64,000 nt of DNA from IMGVR_UViG_3300008110_000030:150618-214617, one strand, 5' to 3'; positions 12,901 to 64,000 are shown, counted from the first letter of the stretch. Notes: generated by a model from the sequence alone, not told the origin. Numbers and translations: made by a program.

Positions 12901-15900
12901 AAATCCTTGATAAAATTTATACTGACTTGACTCGTCAGGTATCAAAGAATTTAAATATGTTCTTGGAACATAACCTATTAATTTTTGTGCGTATTTTTGT
13001 TGACTGTTATCAAAGTTAACACTATCTAAACTATAGAATTCTTCAAACTGACTAATCTTATATTCAAAGTTAGGCAACAACTGTGCAACTGGTTGCTTGC
13101 CTAGTAGTGTCCAATCTTCATAATTAAAAAGTTCTCTAGCTAATGTGCGAGCTTTAGCTTGATAATATTTTGTTTGGTATCTAACAACATTTCCAATTTC
13201 ATAATCAATGTTAGGTTCCCAATCATTAATCTTGGCGCTGTCATATACAAATCCTGGAATGTAAAAATCACCCTTCCAGCCGTCTGTCATGAACCCTTTA
13301 ATTTTGAATCTCTTCTGTCTATATCCAGAAGTTGGTTCGTAAATTAGATCATTAAAAATTGTTTTATTGTCAAAAACTACAACGTGTTCTTTTTGTACTA
13401 GACTAATTTTTACAAAATAAACACCATCAGCCGTGCCAGCAGTATCAATAACAAAAGAACCTTCTTGTCTAGAAATTCTTACTTTGGTTCTATCAATAGT
13501 AGTACCATCTGCTTTTAGTAGAGTATAATCATAAAAACTATCGTATAGATCATCAACGACAGAATCTTCACTTGTAAAATAAATCTTTTCTGCAAAAGGA
13601 GAAAGACTGATTACTGAACTGGTAGACCAATTTTGTAGACTCCAGAATAAAAACTCTTTTCCTGCTAATTTCCAATCTGCAATTACATCTAGCTCTGGTA
13701 AAAGATTTTCAAATTTAAATCCTAAGGATTTAACTTGTTCGCCGTAACCAAGTATAAAATCAAATACATCTTGTATAGAATTATATTTTGTTCCATAAGG
13801 CACAATTGTATCAACGTCTTCAAAAGAATTTGGTACAAATGCTTCAACACCACCAATTGCTGGAAGGTAAGGAAGTGGATAATATAATCCTGGATCAAAT
13901 GCCTGCTTAGTCAAGTGAGTTGAAATTGCTCTATAATATTGTTGGCCGTTAGCAACTACTAGTCCAGCATTTACAGTGGCGTTTGCAGACCAATATATAA
14001 ATGGTTCAGTTGTTCCGCCTACAGATATTACAGGATCATTAGTAGCATGGATTGCTTTTTTAATTGTAAAATAAGGAGAGTTAGAATCATATCCTCTCAC
14101 CATATATCCAGCTTCTGTTCTTTCAACAATAATACCAGACATTGTTAAAGTTTTAGTAGGAGACCCTGTAGAAAGAACTAATTGATAGTTTTCTTCTGGG
14201 ACATACACTTTGTCAACTGTTTTATAAGATGTTACTGTTTCCAATGCAACTCTAAACTTATCCTTACTTGTAAATCCGCCAACTTTATAAATTAAGTTTG
14301 ATTGAATTCTATTTAGGTAGTTTTGTAATCTAAATGCTGGATTAGAAAATCTCTGTCTTAAATTTTCAACAATGTAAGGATGATAACCTGTTGCATAAAC
14401 AAAATTATTATCTATTGTATTTGAAAAAACCTTTAGTGCAGACGGACTCAGTCTTTCTAAAGAATCTTTATATACGATCTGATTAGCAATATTAAAGACA
14501 TTTCGTGAAGTGTCAAATCCTAAAGTTGCATACTTAGCTGGCATTATTAGCGCCATTGCTATTTGCACTGCAAAAGGATAGATATCACTTCTTCTCCAAG
14601 CAGTTTCTGCAGGACCCATATCACCAAATGACCAGTTAGTATATCTTGCAGAATAATCAAAATCTTTTACAGCATTGACTTGTAAAGGATCTTTTAAACT
14701 GCCGTATGAATCTACAGGGATAATATTAGACAGTCCTGGTCTTGCATATTTTTCATCATAGCCTTTTCTAACTCCATTTCGAATATATCCATATTCCAAA
14801 TCTTTCCACATAACATCATTACCAGATGTATACGGAGCAGGGCCGTATTCAGTTTCCCACCAAGTTGGCTTTTTATAGAAGCCTAACATTTCCCAAGGGC
14901 AGGTATGTGGTCTATCTGTATCGTAATGCTGTTTGTAAATTTTTCTCCAAGAGCCGGTGATAAATGCATTTCTATCAATTATGCCATTTGAATTTACGTA
15001 TTTGAATCCAAAGTTGTTTAGGTAAATTTCATTTTCGTTTGCTGTATAGTCAATACTATAGATACCAACCCATTTTAAAAATTCATCTTCAATAGATTGG
15101 TCAAATTGCTCAGACGTGTATCCAGTTTTTCTAAATATGCTAGGCAAAATTTCATTTACATCTAAAATTCTTGGATCGTATTCAACTTTTAAATTGTTGT
15201 AAATTCGTTTTTCTAACTCTAATAATAGTTGATCTCTGTCATCGCCAAAGCAAACTGTAACTGACCCGTCATGTCCTTGTATAACTGACGTTGGTTCAAT
15301 ATACGTGTCATCTAAGTAAATTGCTGGCTCAAAACTAGGATATAGTCCTAGTTTTGTTGGTGACATAGGCATCACTGCACCATGAATATTATTAAAAACT
15401 CTAATTAAAATCTCATCACTTACTGATAGTGTATTAACGAATCTAACTAACGGATTGTTTACATCAAAAGAATAATCTTTATCAATGGTCAACTGCTCTC
15501 CGTTAACATATACTAATATTGCCTTTTTGCCAAACAAAAATCTATCGTAAATTTCTGATCCATATGCATACGCCTTAATATTTGTATCGTTAACAGTGTA
15601 TGTATAATCTCGCTTGTTTAAGCCATACGGCAACATATCACTATAATAAAACATAGAAGCAGGAGTTTTATCTTTAGCAATACTTAAAATTATCTTATCT
15701 AATGCATCTGGAATATTAGCATACTCTGCTAATTCTGTAAATTTTTGTAATACTAAAATTTTATATCTTTGATATTCCAATGCAGACCAACGAATAGAAT
15801 GTATTAGATTATAATCTTTATTAGCTATTAGTGCGCCTGCCATTGCAACCAGACCGTCGTGTTGAACAAATCTTCTTCCGTATTTGTCCAAGTTTTCTAA

Positions 15901-31884: not shown

Positions 31885-32133
31885 ATGTTTAAAGAAAAGC
31901 ATGAACGATTTCTAGAACTTATTATTGCATATTACAACTGCAAAGAGAACTGGTTAGAAAACGGCACACGCAATCACACCATTGCGTACCGTAAAGTTCT
32001 GAAAGAATTAAGCAGGTTAACTAAAGAGATGTCTGATATCGTGATGGAAGCACAGCACGATAGATGGCAGGAAAATAAGAAAATGCGTGAAAACGGAGGT
32101 ACTTTTGTTACAAGAAGAAGGCCAAAAGTATAA
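31885..32133 (+). CDS. Small basic helical protein, possible divergent Hc1-like paralog
   Basis: ENWLENGTRNHTIAYRKVLKELSRLTKE parallels EKFVKGNSAAGTRARKALAELAKAVK of the next gene. Confidence 0.55.
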   Translation: MFKEKHERFLELIIAYYNCKENWLENGTRNHTIAYRKVLKELSRLTKEMSDIVMEAQHDRWQENKKMRENGGTFVTRRRPKV

Positions 32134-41812: not shown

Positions 41813-43000
41813 ATGTCCGTATTGCTAAATGAAAAATGGCAAGATACAAAAGAGGCCCTACTAGAAGGCCTACAAGGCCACAAGCGTAGTGTCATGGGTG
41901 TGACCCTTGAAAACACTCGTAGGTATCTTGCAGAAAGTGCAACAGCTGGTTCAACCAGTGCAGGTAACGTTGCAACACTAAACCGCGTGATTCTTCCAGT
42001 AATCCGCCGTGTAATGCCAACAGTCATTGCTAACGAAATCGTTGGCGTACAACCAATGACTGGTCCAGTTGGTCAAATCCACACACTACGTATTCGTTAC
42101 GCAGATGGTGGTGATGGCGTAACAGCTGGAGATGAAGCACTAAGCCCATTCAAGATTGCGGCTGCTTATTCTGGTAACAACACAGACGCTACACCAGGTG
42201 CAAGTAGTACTGCTAGCCTAGAAGGCAACCCAGGTAAGCGTATGAGTATCCAAATCTTGAAACAAGCTGTAGAAGCCAAGACACGTAAGCTAAGTGCTCG
42301 TTGGACTTTTGAAGCTGCTCAAGATGCACAAGCTCAGCAAGGTATTGATATCGAAGCTGAAATTATGGCTGCTCTAGCACAAGAAATTACAGCTGAAATT
42401 GACCAAGAAATTCTTTCTAGCCTACGTGGTCTAGCAAGCGTTGGTCAAACTTACGACCAAGCTGCCGTATCTGGTACAGCTACATTCGTTGGTGACGAGC
42501 ATGCCGCATTGGCAGTTCAAATCAACCGTGTTGCTAACCAAATCGCTCAGCGTACACGTCGTGGTGCAGGTAACTGGGCTGTTGTGTCTAACCAGGCATT
42601 GACAATTCTACAATCTGCAACAACAAGTGCGTTTGCACGTACAACAGAAGGTACTTTCGAAGCTCCTACAAACACTAAGTTTGTTGGTACATTGAACGGT
42701 GCTATGCGTGTGTATGTTGATACATACTTAGCAGACAGTGGTAGCCAAACTATCAATGACAACCAAGTATTAGTTGGTTATAAAGGTCCTAGCGAGGCAG
42801 ATGCTGCCGCGTTCTATTGCCCATATATTCCTCTAATGAGTTCTGGTGTTGTTCTAGATCCAGCTACTTTTGAACCAGTAGTTGGCTTCATGACACGTTA
42901 TGGTTATGTAGAGTTAAACAACACTGCTTCTTCTCTAGGTAACGCGGCTGACTATCTAAGCAAGGTATCTATTACCGCTGCCAACGTTAGCTTCCAATAA
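41813..43000 (+). CDS. gp23: Major capsid protein
   Basis: IRRVMPTVIANEIVGVQPMTGPVGQI...AKTRKLSARWTFEAAQD...EITAEIDQEI...AAFYCPYIPL...FMTRYG. Confidence 0.97.
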   Translation: MSVLLNEKWQDTKEALLEGLQGHKRSVMGVTLENTRRYLAESATAGSTSAGNVATLNRVILPVIRRVMPTVIANEIVGVQPMTGPVGQIHTLRIRYADGGDGVTAGDEALSPFKIAAAYSGNNTDATPGASSTASLEGNPGKRMSIQILKQAVEAKTRKLSARWTFEAAQDAQAQQGIDIEAEIMAALAQEITAEIDQEILSSLRGLASVGQTYDQAAVSGTATFVGDEHAALAVQINRVANQIAQRTRRGAGNWAVVSNQALTILQSATTSAFARTTEGTFEAPTNTKFVGTLNGAMRVYVDTYLADSGSQTINDNQVLVGYKGPSEADAAAFYCPYIPLMSSGVVLDPATFEPVVGFMTRYGYVELNNTASSLGNAADYLSKVSITAANVSFQ

Positions 43001-43023
43001 TCTTAAGAGATTAGAAGAAAAAC

Positions 43024-43050
43024 AAAAAGCCCCAGCAATGGGGCTTTTTT
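43024..43050 (+). terminator. Intrinsic terminator after MCP
   Basis: AAAAAGCCCCA-GCAA-TGGGGCTTTTTT. Confidence 0.9.
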
Positions 43051-43066
43051 GTGAGTAAATATACTT

Positions 43067-43348
43067 GTGATGCAAGAGTATTCTATAACTAATAGTTTAG
43101 ACTGGCAACAGGTCAGATCTAGGATGTCTAAGAGTAAAGACAACTTGGGCATATTTAAACGCGATATTGATAGACTATTAAAAGGTATTGATGTTGAAAT
43201 AATTAAACTAGGTAATTTAGAAATCACCGCAAGAAACAATAAAAGCCAGTCTAGTCTAGACCGTGCGCAAGCACAATTAGACATAGTTAATCAACAAATA
43301 AAGAATTTCAATAAATTTTACATAATGGCTCTTATGACGCATAGCTAA
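43067..43348 (+). CDS. Hypothetical helical protein
   Basis: 93-aa ORF preceded by GTAAATA (43055-43061). Confidence 0.6.
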   Translation: MMQEYSITNSLDWQQVRSRMSKSKDNLGIFKRDIDRLLKGIDVEIIKLGNLEITARNNKSQSSLDRAQAQLDIVNQQIKNFNKFYIMALMTHS

Positions 43349-43389
43349 TGTTTTTTAGATACAGATAAATATCATATAAGGAAAAATAC

Positions 43390-44481
43390 ATGTCTACAAG
43401 AGAAGTCATACGAACAACAGGTGATTGGCACGTGCAAGCCACGCAAGATCTGCACCTAGAAACTCAGTATCTAAATGGAAACAATGGTACTGTATATGTT
43501 TATGGCAATTTAATGGTAAGAGGTAATACTACTACTATTGAATCTAATGATCTTAGTATTGGCGATAAAGTTTTAGTTTTAAACAAAGGTGAACCAGGAA
43601 TAGCTGGTGGCACTGAAGCAGGCGTAAGCGTAGATGGTATTTCAGGAATAAGCATTAGTAGAGGAGGTCCAAACGACCCAGCAGAAAATGCCAATTGGTT
43701 TTTTAATCAAAATAAAAATTGGAGTTATGACGGAACACTCACAAGCGGAATGTGGGAAGCTATCATTGGACCTCCAACAGGCGGCGTTGGTACACATTCA
43801 GGCGCGATATTAAATGCTATTCGAACAGGATCAGCAAATACTGATTTAAGTTTACTTGGCGCTGAAAATGCCAGCGCAGTTGTAACATTAGATGGAGTTG
43901 TTAACTACACTCAACGTATTCTTACTCGTTCAAATCCAGATGATGTGCCAAATAAAGGTTATGTTGATTATGCTATTGAAGCACAAGTGGATAGAAGAAG
44001 ATTACAATTAAATTATAGAAATAGTTTAGGGACACTTGTACAAGTTTCTAATACGTATGTAGAACTTACTGACGCAAACGTTCCTGGTTATGGAAATCCT
44101 TCATCCATACTTGAACCACAATTAAGAACAAGTATTGGTGGCAATCAATGGATTACTACTTATAACAACAGACTTGTTATTGGTGATTTAAAGATTTTAG
44201 ATTCAAATGAAATTACAATGGATGCACAAAATACAGCATTAGTACTTTCAACAAGACCTGGAGCATCAGCTACACTTAATCCTTCAGTGGAATTAAAAAC
44301 ATCATTGAGTATGGTCATTGATAATACATATTCAGTACCTAATAATGAAGCTGGTAAGGTTAAACTTTACCCAGAGCAAGAAGGTCCAGGGGGGACAGGA
44401 TTATATTTTGTAAATAGTGAAAACGTTAGAGACGAGCTAGTTAGTAAACGTCGTTCTTTCTTCGCTAGTCTAATGTTTTAA
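43390..44481 (+). CDS. Putative virion structural protein
   Basis: GATAAATA at 43364-43371, SD AAGGA; VYGNLMVRGNTTTIESNDLSIGDKVLVLNKGE fibre-type motif; VPNKGYVD. Confidence 0.65.
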   Translation: MSTREVIRTTGDWHVQATQDLHLETQYLNGNNGTVYVYGNLMVRGNTTTIESNDLSIGDKVLVLNKGEPGIAGGTEAGVSVDGISGISISRGGPNDPAENANWFFNQNKNWSYDGTLTSGMWEAIIGPPTGGVGTHSGAILNAIRTGSANTDLSLLGAENASAVVTLDGVVNYTQRILTRSNPDDVPNKGYVDYAIEAQVDRRRLQLNYRNSLGTLVQVSNTYVELTDANVPGYGNPSSILEPQLRTSIGGNQWITTYNNRLVIGDLKILDSNEITMDAQNTALVLSTRPGASATLNPSVELKTSLSMVIDNTYSVPNNEAGKVKLYPEQEGPGGTGLYFVNSENVRDELVSKRRSFFASLMF

Positions 44482-52415: not shown

Positions 52416-52745
52416 ATGGCAACGAATTTTAAAAACAAAGTATTAGCAGAAGTGGGAACAACTCCACAAGCGTTAGTGACTGCTGGATCAACAGCTAAAA
52501 TCACAGTTATTGGTTTAAGCATTACTAATATTACTGATGGTGTTGTACTAGCATCGTTACAATTAACAGATGATCTTGGAACTAGCGGATATTTTATTAG
52601 AAATGTACCAATTCCACCCAATCAAAGTTTACGTGTAGTTAATGGTGGTGAAAAATTAATTGTGGCACCATCTAATATTTTAACAGCGGTAGCAGATCAA
52701 GAAGATAGTCTTGATATCATTGCTAGTTTTGTTGAAATTACATAA
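52416..52745 (+). CDS. Small virion structural protein
   Basis: MATNFKN...VPIPPNQSL...GEKLIV; similar to the 44491 gene. Confidence 0.65.
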   Translation: MATNFKNKVLAEVGTTPQALVTAGSTAKITVIGLSITNITDGVVLASLQLTDDLGTSGYFIRNVPIPPNQSLRVVNGGEKLIVAPSNILTAVADQEDSLDIIASFVEIT

Positions 52746-52756
52746 GGAATAATGTT

Positions 52757-53122
52757 ATGGCACAAGTGAGTATAGGCAATTGGGAAGGAGATAGTCCACT
52801 AGGACCGTCAGAACAAAGATATTTCTATGCATTAAGAACTGACGATGAAGGTAATCTTTATTTTACTAGAATAGATCAGTGGACTGGAACAGATAGTGTT
52901 CAAATAAACAGACCAGGCGATGGGAATGATGATTTTGAAGGATTTGAAATTGGTATTGATCATTTTGATGGAAAAGACCCAGACACGCACGAGCGTCCTT
53001 TTCCTAATTTAGTATATGATCAATATAGATTTGACAGCAAATCAATATACTACTATCTAAATGCAGAAGGTGAATTAGTAGTTAGAATTAACAAGACTTA
53101 CACTTACCCCAGTGATGTGTAA
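52757..53122 (+). CDS. Hypothetical protein, probably virion-associated
   Basis: SD AAGGA; YFYALRTDDEGNLYF...YYYLNAEGELVVRIN; inside the structural cluster. Confidence 0.6.
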   Translation: MAQVSIGNWEGDSPLGPSEQRYFYALRTDDEGNLYFTRIDQWTGTDSVQINRPGDGNDDFEGFEIGIDHFDGKDPDTHERPFPNLVYDQYRFDSKSIYYYLNAEGELVVRINKTYTYPSDV

Positions 53123-53170: not shown

Positions 53171-56100
53171 ATGGCCGAATTTAAACTAGGTAGACTAAGA
53201 TTCGTATGGAAAGGCACATGGACTGCCACTACCGCATACGTAAAAGATGACATTGTTCGTCACGGTGGTAAAACATACGTTGCTAAAACAGCACATACAT
53301 CAGCATCAAATTTTTATACAGATTCAGATGCAAGCAGATGGGAACTAATGTCAGATGGTATTCAATGGATTAACACTCCTTGGACAGCCAGCACCGTCTA
53401 TAAAGAAGGTGACATAGTTCGCTATGGCGGGAAAGTTTATCTATGTATAGATGGTCATACTGCTAACGGAACACAAAACGGCGGATTTTATACAGATCTA
53501 GGAATCAACAAGTGGAGTTTATTTGTTGATGGAATTACTGCTGTTGGTGATTGGGCAGTTAGCACTTACTATAAGTTGGGCGACATTGCCAAATACAATG
53601 GTATTACTTATATTTGTGTACAGGCGCACACTTCTGCATCTTCAATTGCTAGTGGTCTAGAAGCAAACATTAATGATTGGGATGTCTTTGCTGAGGGTAT
53701 TAAATATCGAGGTGCTTGGTCAGGCACAACTCGTTACATTCTAAATGACGTTGTTAAATTTGGTGCTAGTTTATATATTTGCTCTCTGCCACACACTAGT
53801 ACTAGTGTATTTGAAGATAACAAATGGTTCCTATTCACTTCTGGATTTGAATTTGGCGGAACATGGTCTAATACAACAGAATACCAAATTGGTGATGTAG
53901 TTCGATATGGTGGTTATTTGTATGTAGCCATTTCTAGAAATACTGGTCAACTTCCAACAGGAACATCAGGTAACTGGTCATTGTTGTCCATGGCATACAG
54001 CACTAACGGAACATACAGTAACGTTGCTACATATAAGCCAGGTGAAGTTGTTAGACATGGTGGTAACACATTTGTTGCTAACCAAGAAATTGGCGTTGGT
54101 GAAACTCCAGTCAGCGATGTTGCCAAATGGGATCTTCTAGTTTCAGGTGTTCGTTGGACAGGCGACTGGACAGATACCCCAACTGAAGTAACTTATAAAA
54201 TCAACGATCTAGTAAAATATGTTGCTACAACGTATGTTTGCGTAACAGAACACGATCCTACAAGTTTGAATCGTCCTGATTTAGACGCACTTGGAACAAA
54301 TTGGATTCCTTTTGCAGAAGGCGCAGACGTTAACGTTATGGTTCGTCGTGGCGACTTGGTTACTCGTAATGCTATACAAAACATTCGACTACCAGTAGGT
54401 GACGCTGGACAAATTTTAAAAGTACAAAATAATGGTTTTGATTTAACATGGGGTAACGTTGGTAGTATTACCAACATTTATTACGTTAGTACTGAAGGTC
54501 TTGACGGCCCAACACGTGGTACCTCAATTGATCAACCATTTAGAACAATCAAGTATGCTTGTGATTTTGTAAGATTACAAAATCCTGCAACGTTTAATAA
54601 TCCAGCTGTTATTAACGTTAAGACTGGCGTATATGACGAAGTATTCCCAATTAGTCTTCCTAAATTTACTTCTCTTGTTGGTGATGAACTACGTATGAGT
54701 ATTGTTCAGCCAACACCTGCAACTAGTCACTTGGATAAGTTTAGAATGCGTGATAGTACAACTATTCGTAACTTTACTTTCCGTGGTGCTACTGGCGCAC
54801 CAGGAGGCGGATTTACTGAAGTTAATCAATACGGAACAAGAAGACCAACAGGTGGTGCATGGTGCTGTCTAGATCCAGGCACAGGTCCTAATGATGAATC
54901 CGCTTGGGTAGGTGCTCGTTCTCCATACATCCAAAACGTAACAACGTTTGGTGATAATTGCGTAGGGCAAAAGATTGACGGGGCATTACACAACGGTGGT
55001 AACAAATCTATTACATCAAACGACTTTACTCAGGTTATGAGTGATTCTATTGGTGCATGGTGTACTAACCAAGGTCGTGCAGAACTTGTTTCTGTGTTTA
55101 CATACTATAGCTACATTGGTTACTTGTGTGAAAACGGCGGTGTTATTCGTGCTACTAACGGTAACAACTCATATGGTACATATGGTTCTGTATCTGAAGG
55201 CGTTGACCCAACAGAAATTTCTCGTACTGCAACTGTAGACAACAGAAGATTAAATGCTATTGTTGACGTTACGCAAACAGACGGCGAAAGCGTTTTATAT
55301 TTAGAATACTTGAATGCTGGTGAAGACTATACTTCAGCAACTTATAATTTTACTGGATCAGGACTAAGTGCAAGTCTTAGTGCAACTGCTGATATTGCCA
55401 CAGGCGGTGTAGCAGAAGTTCGAGTACTAGCTGACGGTGACAGTTATGTTGGCGTACAAAATAACGCACAGTTAGGTGACACAACTTACATTAGGTTGGG
55501 GGCATCAGATATCCAAATTACAAACGGATATAACGGAATGCGTATTCTGTTAATTGACGGAACTGGAACTGGTCAGTATGCTTATATTAGTGCATTTGAT
55601 GGCGGTAGTAAAGACTTAACAGTTAACAAAGAAACATTCACACCATTGACAGTGACTGAAGTTGCTTCAACTGGTAATTTGTTTACTACAGCTGACACTA
55701 GCACCTTAACACTAAACATGCCAATTAATTTCCAAGGCAGTGTAGTAGGTAACGTGGTAGCAGATACTCTTTATTATGTTAAATCTATACCAAACGGTAC
55801 AACATTCACTGTTAGTGCAAGTATTAGTGGCGGCGTAGCTGGTACAGTATTCAACCCAGGAACTGCTACAGGTAATATGGTATTACATGCAGTTGGTTGG
55901 GACGTATTTGCTGACAATATTATAACACCTATTACTGGAGCAACACAAGCTAATCCAGTTGTAATCACTACAGGCACCCCACATGGACTGAAATCTACAT
56001 GGAACGCTAGAATTAGTGGTGTTACTGGTATGACTCAGTTGAACGGTAACACATACTACGTTGACGTTTTGTCAAGCACAACTTTTGCATTATATTCAGA

Positions 56101-59100
56101 TTTTGGTCTAACAACTACAATTAACGGAACAGCATATGGTGCATATTCCGCCGGTGGTTCAGTTAACGGCAAGCAAAGTATTGCTCCATTCCTAAACACA
56201 ACTACTAGATATGTAATTGAACCACGTCCAGTGTTCTCAACAGGTTCAGGCGCAAGTGCAACTCCTGTCAGAACATTAGGTATTGACACATTTACAATTG
56301 TTAATGGTGGTAAAGGATATACCGATGCACCTACTCCAATTATTGCAGGTCCAGACACTGTTGCAGATGCGGTTAATGCCTCAGCGACTGTTACTATCTC
56401 TGGCCCAGTAGACACCATAACTGTATATTCTAGAGGCGGCGGTTATACTAGCGCACCTACTTTACAATTTGTAGGTGGTGGTCTACCAACAGACTACAGT
56501 GACTTTGTAGCTGAAGCAGTTGTTGTATTAGGAGATGCAATATTTGTTCCAGGTACTTCAAGATTTTATGAAGTAACAGTTGCTGGAACACTTAGTCTAA
56601 CAGCACCAACACATACTAGCGGCACTTCTACTAACGGAACTGCTACTTTAAGATATTTAGGTAGAAGAGCTAGTGCTAATGCTAATATGACTAATATTAT
56701 TAAAACATTAGTCTTAAACAATGGCGGTGTTGGATATACTAGTACACCTAGCGTACAAGTAACTGGTGCTAGCGGAACAGGTGCAATTGTTTCCGCAACA
56801 ATCAGTCAAGTTATTAATGAAATTACTCTTGACATTCCTGGTGCTGGTTATAATACAGCGCCTACAGTCACTTTGGTTGGTGGAGATCCTTTAGAATTTG
56901 CAACAGCGGTTGCAGTTTTAGATGCAACACTAACTGATGTTACAATTGTTGAAGGTGGTAACGGATACGTTCCTGCGTCAACAACAGTGACTGTATCTGC
57001 CCCACCAGCAGGCGGTACAACTGCAACTGCTGAAGCAGTAATTGACTTTGGTGCATACATTCCTGGTATTACCCCAGGAGCAGTTACTAGTATTAATATT
57101 CTAACCGCAGGTAGCGGCTATGCAACATCGCCATCAATTCTTATTAATGGTGTTGGTAGTGGAGCAAGTGCCCAAACAATTATTACTGGTATTATTGATA
57201 GAATTGATGTAACAAATCGCGGTAGAGGATATGAATCCACTCCAACAGTTAGTATTACTGGTGGTGGTGGTGGTGGCGCAAGTGCTACTGCTTCAAGAAC
57301 AGGTTCAGTTAACACTATTACAATTATTGATGGTGGTAGTGGATTTACAGGAAATCCTAGTTTAGAATTTATTGGCGGCGGCTTATCTAACGGAAGCCTA
57401 AATCATGCACAAGCTATAGTTTCAGCAATTGATTCAGTGGTTGCAACAGTCACACTTGTAGATGCTGGTGATAATTACACATCAAATCCTGCAATTTCTG
57501 TAACAGGTGGTGGCGGAACTGGACCAACCCTTAGAGCTAGAATTAATGGTCAAGTTAGAACTATTACCGTAACTGATCCAGGTAGTGATTATAGTGGTGT
57601 TGATGCTCCAGTTATTGCCTTTAGTGGTGGTAGAGTATATAAATCACCAGTAGCTGGTTTAAGATATTATACAAATGCCAGTGCGCTAACAGCAATTGGT
57701 ATTAGTCAATTAACACAAACTCTAGCAGGTATTGCTAGAGCAACTGTATTGGCTAAGAATGTTGTTGCTAACACAAACCCTGTAACTTCATATCAACAAG
57801 CGGTAACACGTACTGCTGGCGGCGTAGGATATACACAGCCAACAAATATTGGTTTTGCAATTGACAGTTGGATGAACGGTGTCTATTACACTATTGAAAA
57901 CGGTCAAAATCATGTTAATGCCGCAACAGTATTGCGACTAAACAGACGTTTTTTAAGAACAGACTCAATGCAGTTCTTAGCAACTAACTATCCAGCTGTA
58001 GCTGATGCAACTTGGAGTAGAGACATTGGTTTGATCGTTGATGCTATTGCAAAAGATATTGAAACTCGTGGAGTTGTTAATTCTTCTACAGTTGCAATTA
58101 AGCAAGCATTTATATCAGCTAGAGCTTCTGAACCACTAGCAGTGGCAGGACTTATGGATTTCTTAAGAGATAGTATTGTTAGTATTGTTCAAAACATAGT
58201 ATTAACTCCTCAAATTGATGGAACTACTACTTGGGAAGGTTTATGGGTTGACGCCAAGAGCTATCAGACCAATGACGTTGTATTCTTTGCAGGAAAAACA
58301 TACACTGCTCTAAGTACCCATTTCTCTAACACATTGTTCAGTGTTGATTTGGCAGCAGGTCGCTGGGTTGAAAATACCAATGGACAACAAACATTAGATC
58401 TTCCACTAGAACCAGGTGCTATAACTGCTACTGAAAATTTAGGAAACTACATCAAGGGTATATTACAATATGCTCCTGCTAACGCATCTTGGACAGCGGC
58501 AGCAACATTGTTGACAAGTAACCAATCCTATATTAAAGCAGAAGTTATTGCTTATATAAACAATACATTTGAAGATTTCGTTTACAACCAAGCATTGTGC
58601 GCCCGTGACATTGGATTTATTTTAGATGCAGTGGCCTATGACTTACTCAATGCTCTAATAGCAGAAGCAACTGCAACTGCTACTACAACTGGTGTTATAT
58701 CAAAACTTACAGTTGTTAATGGCGGTGAAGGTTATAGCGGTGGTGTACAAATTGCAATGGCAGGTGGTGGCTCAAGTGGAGCACCTACAGTTAATGCAAC
58801 GGCTACCGCTATTAGGAATCCGTTAACTGGTGCAATTACTGGCTTTACAATGACTAACAAAGGTAAAGGATATGCTTCTTTACCAAGCGTGACTATTACT
58901 CCTGATACAGGAAGTGGTGTAGTTGCTAGAAGTCGTGTGGTTGGTGGTAACGTAAGTAAAGTTAACATTATTCACCCAGGTAGCGGCTATACTTCAGGAC
59001 CATTCTTAAGATTGATTGATCCAAACAACAGTGGCGATGCTGCCTTCCAAGTACGTGTTGCAGACGGTGTATTAAAACAACCTAGATTTACAGGTAGAGG

Positions 59101-62100
59101 AACAGGATTCTTGACCGCTGCCGTTGAAATTAGTGGTGACGGATTTGCTGAAATTACACAAACAGGTAGCTTTATCTATGTTAAGAATTTAACAAATATT
59201 CCTACCCCAGGTGCAAACATACAGTTTGAAGATAATGACACGTTCTATAAATTAGTTACAGTTCGTGAAGTTATTGGACCACAAGGTACAATTAATGCTA
59301 GAGCAATTTTACTAGCCAACAAAGCATTTGTACAAGCAGAAGTTATTAGCTATCTAGATAACTTTACTTTTGACAGTGTAAAATGCTCACGAGATATTGG
59401 TTATATTATTGACGCATTGGCTGATGACTCGTTAACTGGTTCTAACCAAAGATTGTTAGCAGTTAGATGGCAATATGCTAGAGGATTATACACTACATTT
59501 GATCGTCAAAGAATGCAAACAGCTTATGTATTAGAATATTTGCAGACAGAAATTAACCAATTATTCAACTATGCTGATAATGATATTTCAAGTACGCTGA
59601 ATGATTTGATTGAATGGATTAAGAACGAAGAATATTATAAAGATATTAAAGTTCCTCTAAATCCACCTATTGGATATGACGCAGAAAATGATGCTGGATC
59701 TACAGTATTAACTGCTAACCGTGAATTTATTGCAGGTAATGCATTAAGAAGATTTATTAATAATGCTCCTGCTGGTTCTTATACAGTTAATAATAACATT
59801 TGGTTACAAGAATTTAGACAAGTAGTTGACAGTATTGCATACGACTTGATGTATACTGGAAATCAACAAGTTATTGAACATAGCTCAACTTTTTACAGTG
59901 GAGTGAATTTTATCCTTGCTGGTTATACAGGCGATACAAGTGTAGTAAAAGCTGAGTTTGTAAACACATTAACTTATATCAAAACATTAGTACAAGATGT
60001 TGTACAAAACAACGTAGTAGCAGTACTACAGTCTGGTTATACAGTTAGCGGTACAGTTGCAGTAGTTAATGCATCAACTGGTGTTGTAACAGGTCCTGCA
60101 CAAGATAGATCCTTAAGTGCAGGTGATACTGGTACTGCATTCCGTGTAGGCGGCTTATGCGACGAGTTTATTTCAATTATCAATAACAGCCCAACAACTA
60201 TTGGGGTAACTGTTACTGCGACTGCAACTTCCTTTGCTGGATTTGCTAGTGGTGAAGTTGCTAAGAGAACTAAACTATTAAATGCTAAACCAACATTGCG
60301 TACTCAAGCAACAACTTGGATGACTGACAAGTTTGTTAATTTTGAATATGATCAAGACAAATGTTCAAGAGACGTTGGAATCATTGTACAAGCAATTGCT
60401 GACGACATATATGGTGACGTAGCTAAGTCTGTTGAAGCAGGTCAGCGTTATTATGCGGCCACTGCGGCACTTGTAATTAGTGCGCAAAAGCCACAGACTA
60501 TTGCAGCCATTAATTGGATTGGTGAAGTTGTACAACGTGTGACTAACAACGTTACATGGGTAAGAACACAAAACCGTGTGTTCCAAGAACGATTCCCAAG
60601 TTTAACTGGCATGAGCGAAGCATTGCCAGTACTACAAGAACGTGTAAACATTATTAAACGAATTGTTGAATATGGCGCATTCTTTGACCAAGTTAAACAG
60701 ATTCTTTTAGATAATAAGACATACATACAGGCTGAGGTAGTAAGTTTTGTTGATGCCACTTATGAGAACTTGAATTATAGTAGATCATTATGTTCTAGAG
60801 ATGCAGGATTAATTGTTGATGCCTTGATATACGACGTATATGGTGGGTTAAGCAGAAGTCGTGAAGCTGGTTTACGTTACTACCAAAGTGCTAGTGCGTT
60901 AGCCGCTATTACTGGAGATCAACTAACTCCAACAACAACTGCAATTAACTATCTAAGACAATTAGCACAAGCGGTAATTATAAATCAAAATCCGTCAGTG
61001 CAATTCCAAGAAAATACTTTAAGAACAAGTATCAATACAAACACAGGATCAGTTGCGTTCGTAGCAGTTACACCTGGATCTAATTACAGCCAAGGCACAA
61101 CTATCACAACTGCTACTGGTGGTAGCGGATCAATAACTGGCGAAATTGACGCAGTTATTGATGTTGCTACTGGCAGTATCGTTGAAGCAACAGTTGTTAA
61201 CGGTGGTTCAGGATTTAACAATGCGCCAAGTTTGACAATAACAAAACCTACTGCCGCAAGTAAAACTTATGTAAGTATTGTAGGAACAACACTGACATTG
61301 AGTGATACCGTTGGAATATTTGTTGGTATGGAAGTTAGTGGTACTGGATTTACTAGCAACCAGCGTGTAGTGTCTATTAACAGTAACGGAATTGCAGTTG
61401 AACTTAGTGCAACTTCTGATGCTACTCCTGCAGGAAATATTACATTTACTGATATTGGTAGCGGAGCAAGTGCAACTGCTATCTTAGGAGTTGCTTATGA
61501 CCCAGCCAAAGTTGCAGATCTATTAGTTGATGAAAAAATTGACGAAGGAACAGCAGCCTTGTTGGCAGTGATTGAGGGCGGTCCAAGTGTATTGCCTGCT
61601 GGTAGATATGCGGCTCGCTTACAAGTTAGTCCAGAAATTCCAATTCAAATTAGTCCTCCACATGACACTAACACTGTGGTACGTAGTAAGTACTCACAAG
61701 TTCGTTTAACTGGTCACGACTTCTTGAATATTGGTACAGGTAATAAGAACGACACTAACTATCCAGGTATTCCATTAAATGCTCCAGATCAAGCTAACGA
61801 AGTTGTTGAAGTTGGCGGTGGTCGTGTATTCTACACTTCAACTGACCAAGACGGTAACTTTAGAGTTGGTGAACTATTCCGCGTTGAACAGTCCACTGGT
61901 ATTGCTACATTGAATGCTGATGCGTTTAACTTGAGTGGTTTGAACGAACTATCACTTGGTGGTGTTACACTTGGTGGATCAGGCGCTGTTATTCGTGAAT
62001 TCTCAACAGACAGTACTTTCTTTGCTAACAGTGACAACATTGTTCCAACACAGAAAGCGATTAAGACTTACATCCAAAGCGCATTAGGTTCTGGTGGTGG

Positions 62101-63316
62101 TAACATTGCTGTTAACGCGGTTATTGCTGGTGAGATTTTAATTACTGGTGATGAAATCACAACAACAAGCGGTGTTCCAGTTAGATTTACTAACGCTCCA
62201 GGTCTACAATTTGAAGGCGGTGCAAACAGTACAAGTATAACTACTGGTACTATTAGAGTTGGAACTGTATTAACTCCAGGTGGTATTGGTGTAACTGGTA
62301 ACGTATATGTTGGCGGAGTTGTAAACACACAAAGTTTGGTGTCAGGCAGTATTGACAACACTCCAATTGGTGCAAATACTCGTAGTACAGCATTGTTTAC
62401 TACAGTGGGTGCCAACGGCATTGTGTCACTAACAGCTGGTTTGGCTGCAACTGGTACAACTACTGGAACATTGCGTGTAACTGGTGGTGCAGGTATTACT
62501 GGTGACATTTTTGCTGGTGGTAATATTAGTACAACTGGTAGTTTAGAAGGTGCTGGATTAGACAATACACCAATTGGTGCAACTGTTCGTAGCACAGCAT
62601 TGTTTACTACATTGGCTGCTAATGACAGTGTACAATTCACTAAGAATACAAACAGCACAAGTACAGGTACTGGTTCACTAGTAGTTGTAGGTGGTGTGGG
62701 TGTTAGTGGAAACATTACAGTTGGACAGCAATTAAGACTTGCTGGATCAACTAGTGGTACTACTGGATTCCAAGCCCCAGCAAGTGCAGGCAGTACAATT
62801 TACGTACTTCCAGGTGCAGATGGTGCCGCAGGTACTAGTTTGGTTACTAACGGAAGCGGTGTACTAAGTTGGGGTCAAGCAGGAGCAACAGTTTCTGATA
62901 ACACAACAACTAACGCTAGTTATTATCCAGCAATGTCAAATGTAACAAGCGGTGGCGTGAGCTCATTAACAGTATCAAGTACCAAGTTTACATTTAACCC
63001 AAGCAGTGGTTTGTTAACAGTTACAGCACTAACAGAAAGTTCAAGCATTGCGTTGAAGCAAAATGTTAATCCAATTACTGATGCATTAGACAACGTGTTG
63101 AAACTAGTTGGTGTTACATACGATCGTCGAGATGGTACACGTAACAACGAACCAGGATTGATTGCAGAAGATGTTAATAAGATTATTCCAAACTTGGTAA
63201 CTAAAGATGCAGACGGAAATCCAGATGGTATTCACTATAGTAAGTTAACTGCTTATTTGGTTGAAGCAATTAAAGCACTAAAAGCAGAAATTGATGATTT
63301 GAAAAACGGTAAGTAA
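53171..63316 (+). CDS. Giant 3381-aa tail fibre/spike with C-terminal peptidase S74-type intramolecular chaperone
   Basis: N-terminal W...Y..GD.V.Y repeats, beta-helix core, G.GY..P repeats, CxRD helical repeats, and C-terminal SSIALKQNV...GLIAEDV...YSKLTAYLVEAIKAL. Confidence 0.85.
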   Translation: MAEFKLGRLRFVWKGTWTATTAYVKDDIVRHGGKTYVAKTAHTSASNFYTDSDASRWELMSDGIQWINTPWTASTVYKEGDIVRYGGKVYLCIDGHTANGTQNGGFYTDLGINKWSLFVDGITAVGDWAVSTYYKLGDIAKYNGITYICVQAHTSASSIASGLEANINDWDVFAEGIKYRGAWSGTTRYILNDVVKFGASLYICSLPHTSTSVFEDNKWFLFTSGFEFGGTWSNTTEYQIGDVVRYGGYLYVAISRNTGQLPTGTSGNWSLLSMAYSTNGTYSNVATYKPGEVVRHGGNTFVANQEIGVGETPVSDVAKWDLLVSGVRWTGDWTDTPTEVTYKINDLVKYVATTYVCVTEHDPTSLNRPDLDALGTNWIPFAEGADVNVMVRRGDLVTRNAIQNIRLPVGDAGQILKVQNNGFDLTWGNVGSITNIYYVSTEGLDGPTRGTSIDQPFRTIKYACDFVRLQNPATFNNPAVINVKTGVYDEVFPISLPKFTSLVGDELRMSIVQPTPATSHLDKFRMRDSTTIRNFTFRGATGAPGGGFTEVNQYGTRRPTGGAWCCLDPGTGPNDESAWVGARSPYIQNVTTFGDNCVGQKIDGALHNGGNKSITSNDFTQVMSDSIGAWCTNQGRAELVSVFTYYSYIGYLCENGGVIRATNGNNSYGTYGSVSEGVDPTEISRTATVDNRRLNAIVDVTQTDGESVLYLEYLNAGEDYTSATYNFTGSGLSASLSATADIATGGVAEVRVLADGDSYVGVQNNAQLGDTTYIRLGASDIQITNGYNGMRILLIDGTGTGQYAYISAFDGGSKDLTVNKETFTPLTVTEVASTGNLFTTADTSTLTLNMPINFQGSVVGNVVADTLYYVKSIPNGTTFTVSASISGGVAGTVFNPGTATGNMVLHAVGWDVFADNIITPITGATQANPVVITTGTPHGLKSTWNARISGVTGMTQLNGNTYYVDVLSSTTFALYSDFGLTTTINGTAYGAYSAGGSVNGKQSIAPFLNTTTRYVIEPRPVFSTGSGASATPVRTLGIDTFTIVNGGKGYTDAPTPIIAGPDTVADAVNASATVTISGPVDTITVYSRGGGYTSAPTLQFVGGGLPTDYSDFVAEAVVVLGDAIFVPGTSRFYEVTVAGTLSLTAPTHTSGTSTNGTATLRYLGRRASANANMTNIIKTLVLNNGGVGYTSTPSVQVTGASGTGAIVSATISQVINEITLDIPGAGYNTAPTVTLVGGDPLEFATAVAVLDATLTDVTIVEGGNGYVPASTTVTVSAPPAGGTTATAEAVIDFGAYIPGITPGAVTSINILTAGSGYATSPSILINGVGSGASAQTIITGIIDRIDVTNRGRGYESTPTVSITGGGGGGASATASRTGSVNTITIIDGGSGFTGNPSLEFIGGGLSNGSLNHAQAIVSAIDSVVATVTLVDAGDNYTSNPAISVTGGGGTGPTLRARINGQVRTITVTDPGSDYSGVDAPVIAFSGGRVYKSPVAGLRYYTNASALTAIGISQLTQTLAGIARATVLAKNVVANTNPVTSYQQAVTRTAGGVGYTQPTNIGFAIDSWMNGVYYTIENGQNHVNAATVLRLNRRFLRTDSMQFLATNYPAVADATWSRDIGLIVDAIAKDIETRGVVNSSTVAIKQAFISARASEPLAVAGLMDFLRDSIVSIVQNIVLTPQIDGTTTWEGLWVDAKSYQTNDVVFFAGKTYTALSTHFSNTLFSVDLAAGRWVENTNGQQTLDLPLEPGAITATENLGNYIKGILQYAPANASWTAAATLLTSNQSYIKAEVIAYINNTFEDFVYNQALCARDIGFILDAVAYDLLNALIAEATATATTTGVISKLTVVNGGEGYSGGVQIAMAGGGSSGAPTVNATATAIRNPLTGAITGFTMTNKGKGYASLPSVTITPDTGSGVVARSRVVGGNVSKVNIIHPGSGYTSGPFLRLIDPNNSGDAAFQVRVADGVLKQPRFTGRGTGFLTAAVEISGDGFAEITQTGSFIYVKNLTNIPTPGANIQFEDNDTFYKLVTVREVIGPQGTINARAILLANKAFVQAEVISYLDNFTFDSVKCSRDIGYIIDALADDSLTGSNQRLLAVRWQYARGLYTTFDRQRMQTAYVLEYLQTEINQLFNYADNDISSTLNDLIEWIKNEEYYKDIKVPLNPPIGYDAENDAGSTVLTANREFIAGNALRRFINNAPAGSYTVNNNIWLQEFRQVVDSIAYDLMYTGNQQVIEHSSTFYSGVNFILAGYTGDTSVVKAEFVNTLTYIKTLVQDVVQNNVVAVLQSGYTVSGTVAVVNASTGVVTGPAQDRSLSAGDTGTAFRVGGLCDEFISIINNSPTTIGVTVTATATSFAGFASGEVAKRTKLLNAKPTLRTQATTWMTDKFVNFEYDQDKCSRDVGIIVQAIADDIYGDVAKSVEAGQRYYAATAALVISAQKPQTIAAINWIGEVVQRVTNNVTWVRTQNRVFQERFPSLTGMSEALPVLQERVNIIKRIVEYGAFFDQVKQILLDNKTYIQAEVVSFVDATYENLNYSRSLCSRDAGLIVDALIYDVYGGLSRSREAGLRYYQSASALAAITGDQLTPTTTAINYLRQLAQAVIINQNPSVQFQENTLRTSINTNTGSVAFVAVTPGSNYSQGTTITTATGGSGSITGEIDAVIDVATGSIVEATVVNGGSGFNNAPSLTITKPTAASKTYVSIVGTTLTLSDTVGIFVGMEVSGTGFTSNQRVVSINSNGIAVELSATSDATPAGNITFTDIGSGASATAILGVAYDPAKVADLLVDEKIDEGTAALLAVIEGGPSVLPAGRYAARLQVSPEIPIQISPPHDTNTVVRSKYSQVRLTGHDFLNIGTGNKNDTNYPGIPLNAPDQANEVVEVGGGRVFYTSTDQDGNFRVGELFRVEQSTGIATLNADAFNLSGLNELSLGGVTLGGSGAVIREFSTDSTFFANSDNIVPTQKAIKTYIQSALGSGGGNIAVNAVIAGEILITGDEITTTSGVPVRFTNAPGLQFEGGANSTSITTGTIRVGTVLTPGGIGVTGNVYVGGVVNTQSLVSGSIDNTPIGANTRSTALFTTVGANGIVSLTAGLAATGTTTGTLRVTGGAGITGDIFAGGNISTTGSLEGAGLDNTPIGATVRSTALFTTLAANDSVQFTKNTNSTSTGTGSLVVVGGVGVSGNITVGQQLRLAGSTSGTTGFQAPASAGSTIYVLPGADGAAGTSLVTNGSGVLSWGQAGATVSDNTTTNASYYPAMSNVTSGGVSSLTVSSTKFTFNPSSGLLTVTALTESSSIALKQNVNPITDALDNVLKLVGVTYDRRDGTRNNEPGLIAEDVNKIIPNLVTKDADGNPDGIHYSKLTAYLVEAIKALKAEIDDLKNGK

Positions 63317-63323
63317 TAATACT

Positions 63324-64000
63324 ATGGCGATATTAAAAAATACTTCTTTTAGAGATTCCAACAGCGTACTCACAATACCTTCTGGAACAACTGCACAACG
63401 CCCATTGCGCCCTCCCAACGGTGCAATGAGGTTCAATACTTCAATTGGTCTTGCAGAAATTTACATGAACAACGGTTGGTACGATGCATCTAACGGTTCT
63501 AGACTGATAGATGTTTGGCCAACCAGTATTGATAGTGTTGGAATGTTTGTTGAACTCTGGGGTGCTGGAGGAGGCGGTGGCAGACCAGGTGGTTGGAGTC
63601 AAGGTTCTGAAGGAGGTTCTGGAGGATATACTTGGGGATGGATCAATACTGAAGTAGTCCCTGCTGGATCAACACTTGTTTTACAAGTTGGCGGGGGTGG
63701 ACAGGTAGGTGGAACTAGTGCCGCATTTCCAGGCGGTGGATATCTAGTAGGTGGTGGTGATAATAGATATGGCAGTGCTGGCGGCGGATATACAGGAATA
63801 TTTTTAACAACAGTTACACAAGCAAACGCAATTTTAATTGCGGGGGGCGGCGGAGGTGGCGGAAGTAGCCGTGCTAATACTGGTAATCAAGGCGGCGCAG
63901 GAGGCGGTCTTGAAGGTCGAGATGGGCACAGCCCGTATGATTCAAAAGAAGAATTTAGAGGCCGTGGAGGCACACAAACATTCGCTGGTGAAGCAAGTGG
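63324..64000 (+). CDS. Glycine-rich fibre-tip/receptor-binding-like protein, 3'-truncated by the window edge
   Basis: Not in the ORF track. MAILKNTSF...IPSGTTAQRP...GAMRFNT...ELWGAGGGGG...LQVGGGG...ILIAGGGGGGG, open to the end of the window. Confidence 0.8.
   Translation, partial: MAILKNTSFRDSNSVLTIPSGTTAQRPLRPPNGAMRFNTSIGLAEIYMNNGWYDASNGSRLIDVWPTSIDSVGMFVELWGAGGGGGRPGGWSQGSEGGSGGYTWGWINTEVVPAGSTLVLQVGGGGQVGGTSAAFPGGGYLVGGGDNRYGSAGGGYTGIFLTTVTQANAILIAGGGGGGGSSRANTGNQGGAGGGLEGRDGHSPYDSKEEFRGRGGTQTFAGEAS

Follow-up and report, generated by a model that had tools for sequence, protein, structure and literature searches.

Phycobiliprotein subunits (Pfam PF00502) are about 160-180-aa domains with a globin-like helical fold that assemble as free alpha/beta subunits into the (alpha-beta)3 discs of the cyanobacterial phycobilisome. 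Their chromophore site consists of Cys84, Arg86 and Asp87 on helix E, which provide the thioether to ring A, the propionate contact and the pyrrole-NH contact, respectively. Related domains are found in other settings. ApcE (LCM) carries a single phycobiliprotein domain followed by linker (REP) domains, sits in the phycobilisome core and is understood to attach its bilin autocatalytically. The bilin biosynthesis-associated globins (BBAGs) are phycobiliprotein paralogues outside phycobilisomes that bind bilins in non-photosynthetic bacteria, and are small cellular proteins encoded next to FDBR/HO genes (PMC10151467), while in photocobilin a B12-binding domain is fused to the bilin-binding globin domain. 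Phages also encode bilin genes, but the roles of phage pebS, pcyA, pcyX and cpeT are stated to be unresolved (PMC3037559; PMC11480375), and BBAGs have been suggested as possible partners for phage-made bilins (PMC11480375). Here we analysed a 64-kb stretch (the window) from the genome of a large aquatic phage, one of the uncultured ~350 kb HemO-PcyX phages, in which a giant tail-fibre gene encodes domains that look like diverged phycobiliproteins. We found no prior description of this arrangement.

A sequence-only reading of the window had reported five phycobiliprotein-like repeats inside a giant tail fibre, at 58010-60850. All five [C/W]-x-R-D-x-G motifs were confirmed, in frame +2 and inside one ORF of 3381 aa: WSRD at aa 1615 (nt 58013-58024), CARD at aa 1810 (58598-58609), CSRD at aa 2072 (59384-59395), CSRD at aa 2398 (60362-60373) and CSRD at aa 2541 (60791-60802). 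The first copy has Trp, not Cys, as the sequence-only reading wrote. No other frame of the window carries the motif. The flanking patterns were also present, with L..N..[YF][IV].AEV at aa 1781, 2047 and 2512, and AG.RYY at aa 1495, 2423 and 2566. This is not chance: from composition, 4.5e-4 copies of [CW][AS]RD[IVA]G are expected and 5 are seen, and only 1 of 2000 shuffles gave even one copy. The phycocyanin-alpha string given in that reading, KCARDIGYY, was confirmed by the PDB alignment to 1f99_A. However, the proposed span was too narrow, since a module HMM found seven hits spanning aa 1477-2634 (nt 57599-61072), including a degenerate copy and two partial copies. The ORF contains six to seven predicted all-helical modules of roughly 160 aa, interrupted by a CBM5/12-like insert and a beta-repeat insert, organised as follows:

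53171..63316 (+), giant tail-fibre-like ORF (3381 aa, P0001) that carries all the modules; PHROG 9851 'tail fiber protein' (E 7.5e-195) and PHROG 5342, with 6x CBM_5_12 at the N-terminus and E1_FCCH at aa 930-998.
57599..57850 (+), partial module 0 (aa 1477-1560), C-terminal half of a module, containing AGLRYY; module HMM positions 97-156, E 1.3e-4.
57830..58237 (+), module 1 (aa 1554-1689), with W-S-R-D in place of C-x-R-D; module HMM E 7.7e-9.
58232..58405 (+), CBM_5_12-like insert between modules 1 and 2 (aa 1688-1745), matching the N-terminal CBM_5_12 repeats at aa 13-70 in a self-BLAST (36% identity, E 4e-8).
58430..58699 (+), module 2 (aa 1754-1843), N-terminal half only, with C-A-R-D, running into a beta-rich insert; module HMM positions 36-95, E 9.2e-23.
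58700..59200 (+), beta-rich GG.GY repeat insert (aa 1844-2010), similar to the repeats at aa 980-1480; self-BLAST matches to aa 982-1176 and 1028-1122, and PHROG baseplate/virion repeat families.
59249..59575 (+), module 3 (aa 2027-2135), with K-C-S-R-D-I-G-Y, the copy closest to phycocyanin alpha; module HMM E 4.8e-18.
59567..60094 (+), module 4 (aa 2133-2308), degenerate, with W-L-Q-E replacing C-x-R-D; module HMM positions 4-149, E 3.7e-10.
60137..60640 (+), module 5 (aa 2323-2490), complete, with C-S-R-D; module HMM positions 14-168, E 1.8e-25; folded as model mcc0a87fd8780.
60650..61072 (+), module 6 (aa 2494-2634), with C-S-R-D; module HMM E 7.9e-31; folded (aa 2480-2640) as model m4329dcd53ba0.
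63041..63199 (+), C-terminal intramolecular chaperone domain (Peptidase_S74, PF13884; aa 3291-3343), typical of trimeric phage fibres and spikes; E 5.9e-10, 39.7 bits against a cut-off of 22.

The gene lies in a T4-like structural block with portal, major head and baseplate wedge genes.

Next, we asked whether the resemblance extends to the fold. Two AF2 models of window modules were obtained, one of module 5 (pLDDT 78, all-helical) and one of module 6 (pLDDT 82), and each was aligned exhaustively to 48,161 PDB representatives. For the module 5 model, all 9 chains with Z >= 8 are bilin-binding globin domains, with Z about 10 and rmsd about 3 A over 112-116 residues against phycobiliprotein beta chains. 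For the module 6 model, the top 9 of its 13 chains with Z >= 8 are phycoerythrin, allophycocyanin, ApcE and photocobilin (Z 9.9-11.1), the best being phycoerythrin beta 5aqd_M (Z 11.1 over 144 residues, rmsd 3.4 A). Haem globin sensors come next, at 7.9-8.8. Foldseek's top 50 for the module 6 model are all phycobiliproteins (probability 1.00, TM 0.60). Note that the Foldseek E-values stay above 0.01, and that a Z of 10-11 is below the level (about 13) at which helical folds are unambiguous by the tool's own caveat. An ESM Atlas feature search gave nothing.

The similarity also goes beyond the short motif at the sequence level, although the window protein and its single modules gave no PF00502 hit even at E <= 10, and a six-frame scan of the genome gave only 13.8 bits, elsewhere in the genome. 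By contrast, PF00502 passes its gathering score (22.2 bits) in relatives P0047 (35.2 bits) and P0049 (33.3 bits), over profile positions 28-141 of 155, and it is the only Pfam family hit repeatedly by single modules (5 of 79 at E <= 0.01). Moreover, phycoerythrin beta chains are the top PDB phmmer hits for a P0047 module, with the Cys aligned to the aCLRD Cys, and a profile of 79 modules ranks about 30 phycocyanin chains first in the PDB (best E 0.0019), in register with KCARDIGYY and with Cys84-x-Arg86-Asp87. The phycobiliprotein-type fold, which is a prediction, and probable homology are well supported. The sequence-only reading, which had proposed globin/phycobilin-like helical modules in a virion protein, possibly pigment-binding or merely structural, and had warned of possible convergence, is supported.

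The same module is the building block of a large family of giant phage virion proteins, with 3 to about 30 copies per protein at a period of about 160 aa, which occurs in most T4-like cyanomyoviruses and in the HemO-PcyX phages. C-x-R-D is present in 1803 of 1910 modules (94%) from 121 giant proteins, and 85% of modules have exactly one Cys. In the window, 4 modules have C-x-R-D and a fifth has W-x-R-D, the Trp being kept at this orthologous slot in most close homologues. Interestingly, degenerate modules lose C, R and D together at one orthologous slot, that of module 4 (W.QE, F.QE, F.TE and I.NE in relatives).

We then examined the genomic context. The genome carries hemO next to a pcyX (5owg, E 7e-68), for phycoerythrobilin synthesis, but has no psbA or cpeT. 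All six PcyX-clade records of at least 133 kb carry modules, and none has psbA or cpeT. Modules occur in 24 of 27 cultured cyanomyoviruses. Among 28 complete Kyanoviridae genomes (these 27 plus pelagiphage HTVC008M), modules and the CpeT lyase homologue co-occur (21/24 against 0/4, Fisher p = 0.0017), although these counts are not phylogenetically independent and the test was not corrected for phylogeny. In all 10 genomes with a full-length CpeT, cpeT lies upstream of a module-bearing giant ORF on the same strand, at 0.3-2.2 kb where the ORF start is annotated and under about 3.3 kb from the first module hit otherwise. However, three module-bearing cyanophages, DSL-LC03, B3 and S-ShM2, lack CpeT, and HO and FDBR do not track modules in cultured cyanophages, since P-SSM2 and S-SSM7 have both but no modules. 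A 93%-complete, module-rich phage record of 331,570 bp has no heme oxygenase, FDBR, CpeT or psbA.

These results suggest, and we hold with moderate confidence, that each intact module binds one linear tetrapyrrole, covalently through the motif Cys. This would make the fibre a chromoprotein, so that the virus may carry pigment on its own fibres, which could explain why such phages make bilin pigments. Bilin attachment is inferred here from sequence, predicted fold and context. In this genome the pigment would be phycoerythrobilin made by the phage's own HemO-PcyX cassette and, since no phage lyase was found, attachment would be autocatalytic or host-assisted. In cyanomyoviruses the pigment would come from the host or from phage PebS/PcyA, with the phage CpeT homologue as the candidate lyase. 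Note that T-type lyases generally serve Cys-beta153 rather than Cys84, that several invariant module residues (profile D86, D91, Y107, N51 and E58) are not obviously phycobiliprotein pocket residues, and that, as far as we know, coloured cyanophage particles have not been reported. Light-dependent adsorption has no known mechanism (PMC6628666); P-HM1, P-HM2 and S-PM2 are light-dependent and have modules, while P-SSM2 and P-SSP7 adsorb in the dark and lack them. More speculatively, the pigmented fibre could act as a light-responsive element in adsorption. In its widest form, which we consider unlikely but which the data allow, cyanomyoviruses and the HemO-PcyX jumbo phages would decorate their fibres with bilins, with phage cpeT, pebS, pcyA and pcyX, or host enzymes, serving to pigment the virion. 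The fibre would then be a virion-borne photoreceptor gating adsorption by light, which would explain the behaviour of S-PM2, P-HM1 and P-HM2 and the dark adsorption of the module-less P-SSM2.

However, another possibility could be that the modules are phycobiliprotein-derived helical bundles co-opted as rigid or elastic beads that lengthen a fibre, with no chromophore. C, R and D would then be kept for fold stability or for packing between modules or chains, for example through an Arg-Asp salt bridge. This tentative alternative agrees with the widely varying copy number, as in length-setting repeats, with the interleaved beta-repeat and CBM-like inserts, with the near-complete module-rich phage without bilin genes, with the lack of a tie between modules and HO or FDBR, and with the module-specific invariant residues. 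Against it, a lone Cys kept in 94% of modules that otherwise share about 25% identity is unusual for a spacer, as is its joint loss with R and D. Moreover, the retained residues are exactly the phycobiliprotein chromophore triad, in register, and modules are associated with cpeT.

It is less likely that the conserved Cys/Arg/Asp/Asp/Tyr cluster binds haem, a metal or a host surface molecule, or forms inter-chain disulfide or thioester cross-links that harden the fibre. Haem globin-coupled sensor domains are the next-best structural matches, the invariant acidic residues D86 and D91 could coordinate a cation, and Cys cross-links are plausible in extracellular fibres. But no conserved His for haem ligation appears among the conserved columns, the usual single Cys has no partner within its module, bilin-binding domains outrank haem globins in both fold searches, and the sequence-level matches are to phycobiliproteins only. 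Finally, convergence is very unlikely: the Foldseek and Z values lie in a range that can arise for helical bundles and the window's own modules miss PF00502, but Pfam, the PDB profile search and the two exhaustive fold searches all single out phycobiliproteins, with the motif in register on the equivalent helix, and a tblastn search of 50,697 phage records with P0047 modules (E <= 1e-8) found matches only in Synechococcus phages and cyanophages (37 records).

Compared with phycobiliprotein subunits (C-phycocyanin alpha 1f99_A/1jbo_A, phycoerythrin beta 5aqd_M), the modules share the predicted fold (Z 9.5-11.1, rmsd about 3 A, up to 144 aligned residues) and the in-register Cys-x-Arg-Asp, module 3 even sharing K-C-x-R-D-I-G-Y with phycocyanin alpha. 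However, they are tandem domains inside 1,500-7,300-aa phage virion proteins with no phycobilisome context, and they have extra invariant residues (profile D86, D91, G95-G96-N97, Y107). No stand-alone copies were found, a profile search restricted to 92-294-aa proteins giving only two contig-end fragments. As occurs with ApcE (4xxi, 7eyd_19; Z 8.7-10.4), the phycobiliprotein-like domain is embedded in a large multidomain polypeptide, and ApcE is a precedent for lyase-free attachment, but here there are 6-7 (up to about 30) tandem copies in a phage fibre. Photocobilin (8j2y, 8j2w) is the top or near-top structural match (Z 9.9-10.0), but only its globin part is similar, since Pfam found no B12-binding domain in P0001. 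In contrast to the BBAGs, which are encoded beside FDBR and heme oxygenase genes, the fibre gene lies about 160 kb from hemO-pcyX: in genome coordinates (G000:C1, this genome) the cassette is at 42312-43518, next to Hsp70-fragment, Hsp20 and ClpS genes, and the module ORFs are at about 84.5-85.3 kb and 203.8-213.9 kb. Finally, P0001 shares the C-terminal PF13884 domain and the tail-fibre PHROG matches with phage fibres and spikes of the endosialidase and T5 L-shaped fibre type, and its gene sits in the T4-like baseplate and fibre block, but to our knowledge known fibres of this type have beta-helix or triple-beta-helix shafts, not arrays of globin-fold helical domains.

The analyzed region is AT-rich (GC about 0.32-0.43) and carries a T4-like structural block, with portal, major head protein, baseplate wedge and hub genes. 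The five motifs highlighted by the sequence-only reading all lie in a single ORF, 53171..63316 (+), which encodes a protein of 3381 aa (hereafter P0001), and all of them are where this reading had placed them: W-S-R-D at aa 1615, C-A-R-D at aa 1810, and C-S-R-D at aa 2072, 2398 and 2541. The flanking L..N..[YF][IV].AEV and AG.RYY patterns are also present, with three copies each. No other frame of the window has the motif, and while composition predicts 4.5e-4 copies, 5 were observed. In support of its tail-fibre-like nature, P0001 has six CBM_5_12 repeats at the N-terminus, matches tail-fibre PHROGs (E 7.5e-195) and has a C-terminal Peptidase_S74 intramolecular chaperone domain. Note that the window encodes another giant virion-type protein of different make-up, since a second ORF has CBM_5_12 and FG-GAP matches but none of the phycobiliprotein-like modules. 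The ORFs relevant to this region are the following:

3973-18216 (-), second giant ORF (4747 aa) with CBM_5_12 and FG-GAP matches.
52416-52745, small ORF upstream of the fibre gene, no Pfam match.
52757-53122, small ORF upstream of the fibre gene, no Pfam match.
53171..63316 (+), ORF encoding P0001 (3381 aa).
63324-63998 (+), ORF directly downstream of the fibre gene, which runs off the window end and has an ALK/LTK-type glycine-rich domain (PF12810, E 1.4e-12).

Next, we analyzed the repeat unit. Alignment of the copies showed that the unit is much longer than the motif. A word-index search with aa 1540-2640 found 551 giant proteins, mostly of 3,000-5,000 aa, many of which carry 15-30 tandem copies at a period of about 160 aa. 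An HMM built from the 20 copies present in P0047, a relative of P0001, found 2,009 modules in 121 proteins. By contrast, a word-index search for stand-alone modules, restricted to proteins of 92-294 aa, returned just two fragments. In P0001 the HMM gave seven hits, and a CBM5/12-like piece and GG.GY beta repeats are inserted between modules:

aa 1477-1560, partial module.
aa 1554-1689, module.
aa 1688-1745, CBM5/12-like insert.
aa 1754-1843, N-terminal half of a module, followed by the beta-repeat insert.
aa 1844-2010, GG.GY beta repeats.
aa 2027-2135, module.
aa 2133-2308, degenerate module.
aa 2323-2490, module.
aa 2494-2634, module.

We then asked whether the modules are phycobiliprotein-like at the sequence level. 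P0001 itself gives no PF00502 hit, and its single modules, scanned against Pfam at E <= 10, gave only sub-threshold noise. Similarly, a phmmer search with aa 1540-2620 against the PDB sequences returned only a chance ferredoxin-NADP reductase hit (E 0.35). However, many relatives carry precomputed PF00502 annotations and, on rescanning, P0047 and a second relative, P0049, passed the gathering score (35.2 and 33.3 bits against 22.2), covering profile positions 28-141 of 155. Moreover, when a P0047 module was searched by phmmer against the PDB sequences, phycoerythrin beta chains were returned first, with the module Cys aligned to the chromophore Cys of aCLRD. A profile of 79 diverse modules (mean column identity 25%) ranked about 30 phycocyanin alpha and beta chains at the top of the PDB, with a best E of 0.0019 and in register with K-C-A-R-D-I-G-Y-Y. 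When these modules were scanned singly, PF00502 was the only family hit by several of them (5 of 79). A six-frame scan also revealed a weak, sub-threshold PF00502 match (13.8 bits, E 0.006, profile positions 30-72) in an 87-aa open frame unrelated to the fibre gene, at window 31993-32121 (+), corresponding to positions 182610-182738 of the virus record, which is probably noise. A search for close relatives in 185,579 species genomes found none, although this type of search finds close relatives only and does not exclude cellular homologues.

In agreement with the sequence data, structure prediction supported the phycobiliprotein-type fold. Two modules of P0001 were modelled and each model was compared exhaustively with 48,161 PDB representatives. 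For the model of aa 2323-2490 (pLDDT 78), all 9 chains with Z >= 8 were bilin-binding globin domains (photocobilin 9.9, allophycocyanins 9.6, phycoerythrin 9.5, ApcE 8.7), followed by haem globin sensors at 7.9. For the model of aa 2480-2640 (pLDDT 82), the best match was phycoerythrin beta, with Z 11.1 over 144 residues (rmsd 3.4 A), and the top nine were again all phycobiliprotein, ApcE or photocobilin chains, with globin sensors following at 8.8. Foldseek gave no hit at E <= 0.001 for the first model, although phycobiliproteins and globins were prominent among its weak hits, while for the second model its top 50 were all phycobiliproteins (probability 1.00, TM 0.60, E 0.019). An ESM Atlas feature search was uninformative (best score 0.77). 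Note that the Z values are below the level at which the exhaustive comparison method considers helical folds unambiguous; against this caveat, several independent methods agree, and they agree on register. We conclude that the modules have the phycobiliprotein-type globin fold, as predicted from these models, and that they are very probably homologous to phycobiliproteins, the copies present in P0001 having diverged beyond Pfam detection.

The putative chromophore site is among the most conserved parts of the modules. Across 1,770 near-complete modules, the most conserved profile positions were C77 (0.95), R79 (0.98), D80 (0.98), D91 (1.00), Y107 (0.97), Y72 (0.91), N51 (0.90) and T124 (0.89). 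Of the 1,910 modules that cover the site, 1,803 have C-x-R-D and 38 have W-x-R-D. The rest are degenerate forms that have lost C, R and D together (W.QE, F.TE, F.QE, I.NE), and these usually sit at one orthologous slot, which in P0001 is module 4 (aa 2133-2308). In addition, 85% of the modules contain exactly one Cys. In phycobiliproteins, Cys84, Arg86 and Asp87 are generally regarded as the thioether site, a propionate contact and the pyrrole-NH contact, respectively. A lone, near-invariant Cys in extracellular repeats that are otherwise about 25% identical, and which is lost together with its two partners, is the pattern of a ligand site rather than that of a spacer. This is an inference from conservation, and we consider covalent binding of a bilin by the modules about as likely as not.

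To put these results in context, we examined the genome carrying P0001, an IMG/VR virus record of 214,617 bp, estimated to be 61% complete. This record encodes a heme oxygenase directly followed by a bilin reductase whose closest solved relative is PcyX, the phage phycoerythrobilin synthase (5owg, E 6.8e-68). No psbA, hli, CpeT or CpeS was found in it. Outside the window, the elements of interest in this record are:

42312-43518 (1501-2722 of the extracted locus L004), hemO-pcyX cassette, preceded by ORFs for an Hsp70 C-terminal fragment, an Hsp20 and a ClpS adaptor.
84515-85297, second module-bearing ORF (2856 aa, two strong module hits).

All six IMG/VR records of at least 133 kb whose PcyX is 79-89% identical also carry modules, in one to four giant ORFs, and none of them has psbA or CpeT. 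Published work traces these hemO-pcyX cassettes to phages that probably do not infect cyanobacteria, and considers their purpose to be open (PMC11480375).

We next analyzed the cultured phages. A tblastn search with P0047 modules against 50,697 phage records (E <= 1e-8) found matches only in Synechococcus phages and cyanophages (37 records). The more sensitive profile found modules in 23 of 26 complete cyanomyovirus genomes and in P-HM2, but none in P-SSM2, S-SM2, S-SSM7, pelagiphage HTVC008M, T4 or P-SSP7. Interestingly, CpeT is present in 21 of 24 module-bearing and in 0 of 4 module-less Kyanoviridae genomes (27 cyanomyoviruses plus HTVC008M; Fisher p = 0.0017, not corrected for phylogeny). 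In all ten genomes with a full-length CpeT (S-CAM4, S-H9-1, S-RSM4, S-WAM2, ACG-2014i, S-PM2, S-CAM1, S-RIM32, S-H9-2 and Syn1), cpeT lies upstream of a module-bearing giant ORF on the same strand, with a gap of 0.3-2.2 kb where the ORF start is annotated, and under about 3.3 kb from the first module hit otherwise. In eleven other cyanophage records (e.g. P-SSM4, Syn9, P-HM1/2 and Syn19) the CpeT match is weak and comes as two half-matches within short ORFs of 134-224 aa, suggesting a shortened, divergent CpeT-like protein, distinct from the full-length form that sits next to the fibre gene in other phages. The role of phage cpeT has been called "unresolved", and that of pcyA/pebS "a mystery" (Sullivan et al., PMC3037559).

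Not all the results support a link between the modules and pigment supply. We considered the possibility that the heme oxygenase (HO) and FDBR genes track the modules, but this was rejected for the cultured cyanophages, since P-SSM2 and S-SSM7 have both genes but no modules. Three module-bearing phages lack CpeT. In the P0047-type, module-rich lineage of ~330 kb phages, only 2 of 8 long records have FDBR, and the same two have HO among the five long records searched for it. One record of this lineage (G019, 331,570 bp, 93% complete) has no FDBR, HO, CpeT or psbA, while its 92%-complete relative (G020) has adjacent HO and FDBR genes. Phage-encoded pigment supply is therefore not obligatory: either the host supplies the pigment or the modules can function without it.

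A possible function was suggested by the literature on adsorption, which in some cyanomyoviruses depends on light independently of host photosynthesis (PMC6628666). Adsorption of S-PM2, P-HM1 and P-HM2 requires light, while P-SSM2 and the podovirus P-SSP7 adsorb in the dark. Module status matches in all five phages: the three light-dependent phages have modules and the two dark-adsorbing phages do not. However, the sample is small and partly redundant, since P-HM1 and P-HM2 are near-identical, and we treat this as a lead and not as evidence of mechanism. The proposal that a pigmented fibre mediates light-gated adsorption is speculative and, at present, unlikely.

A phycobiliprotein-type domain that keeps its attachment Cys and is repeated up to about 30 times in virion fibres is a concrete candidate acceptor for the bilins made by phage hemO with pcyX, pebS or pcyA, including in phages that apparently do not infect cyanobacteria, and a candidate substrate for the widespread phage CpeT lyase homologue. 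It would be the first phycobiliprotein-like module described in a virus particle; full-text searches found no description of such domains in phage virion proteins. Even if the modules prove colourless, these results reannotate a large family of giant cyanophage proteins, which in the GenBank/RefSeq records are inconsistently named as short tail fiber, tail fiber, baseplate wedge subunit or initiator, virion structural protein, or hypothetical, and document the capture and massive tandem amplification of a host light-harvesting fold as a structural building block.

Finally, our results confirm the motifs noticed in the sequence-only reading and support its cautious interpretation, namely that these are globin/phycobilin-like helical modules embedded in a virion protein, possibly pigment-binding or merely structural. 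The ORF encodes arrays of domains with a predicted phycobiliprotein fold and a conserved Cys-x-Arg-Asp site in a phage tail-fibre protein, which belongs to a very large family of giant proteins present in cyanomyoviruses and HemO-PcyX phages. We do not consider the modules to be members of the Pfam phycobiliprotein family in the strict sense, since the copies present in the window miss the profile threshold and they are not free subunits. They are best described as a new, virus-specific branch of the phycobiliprotein/globin-like fold.
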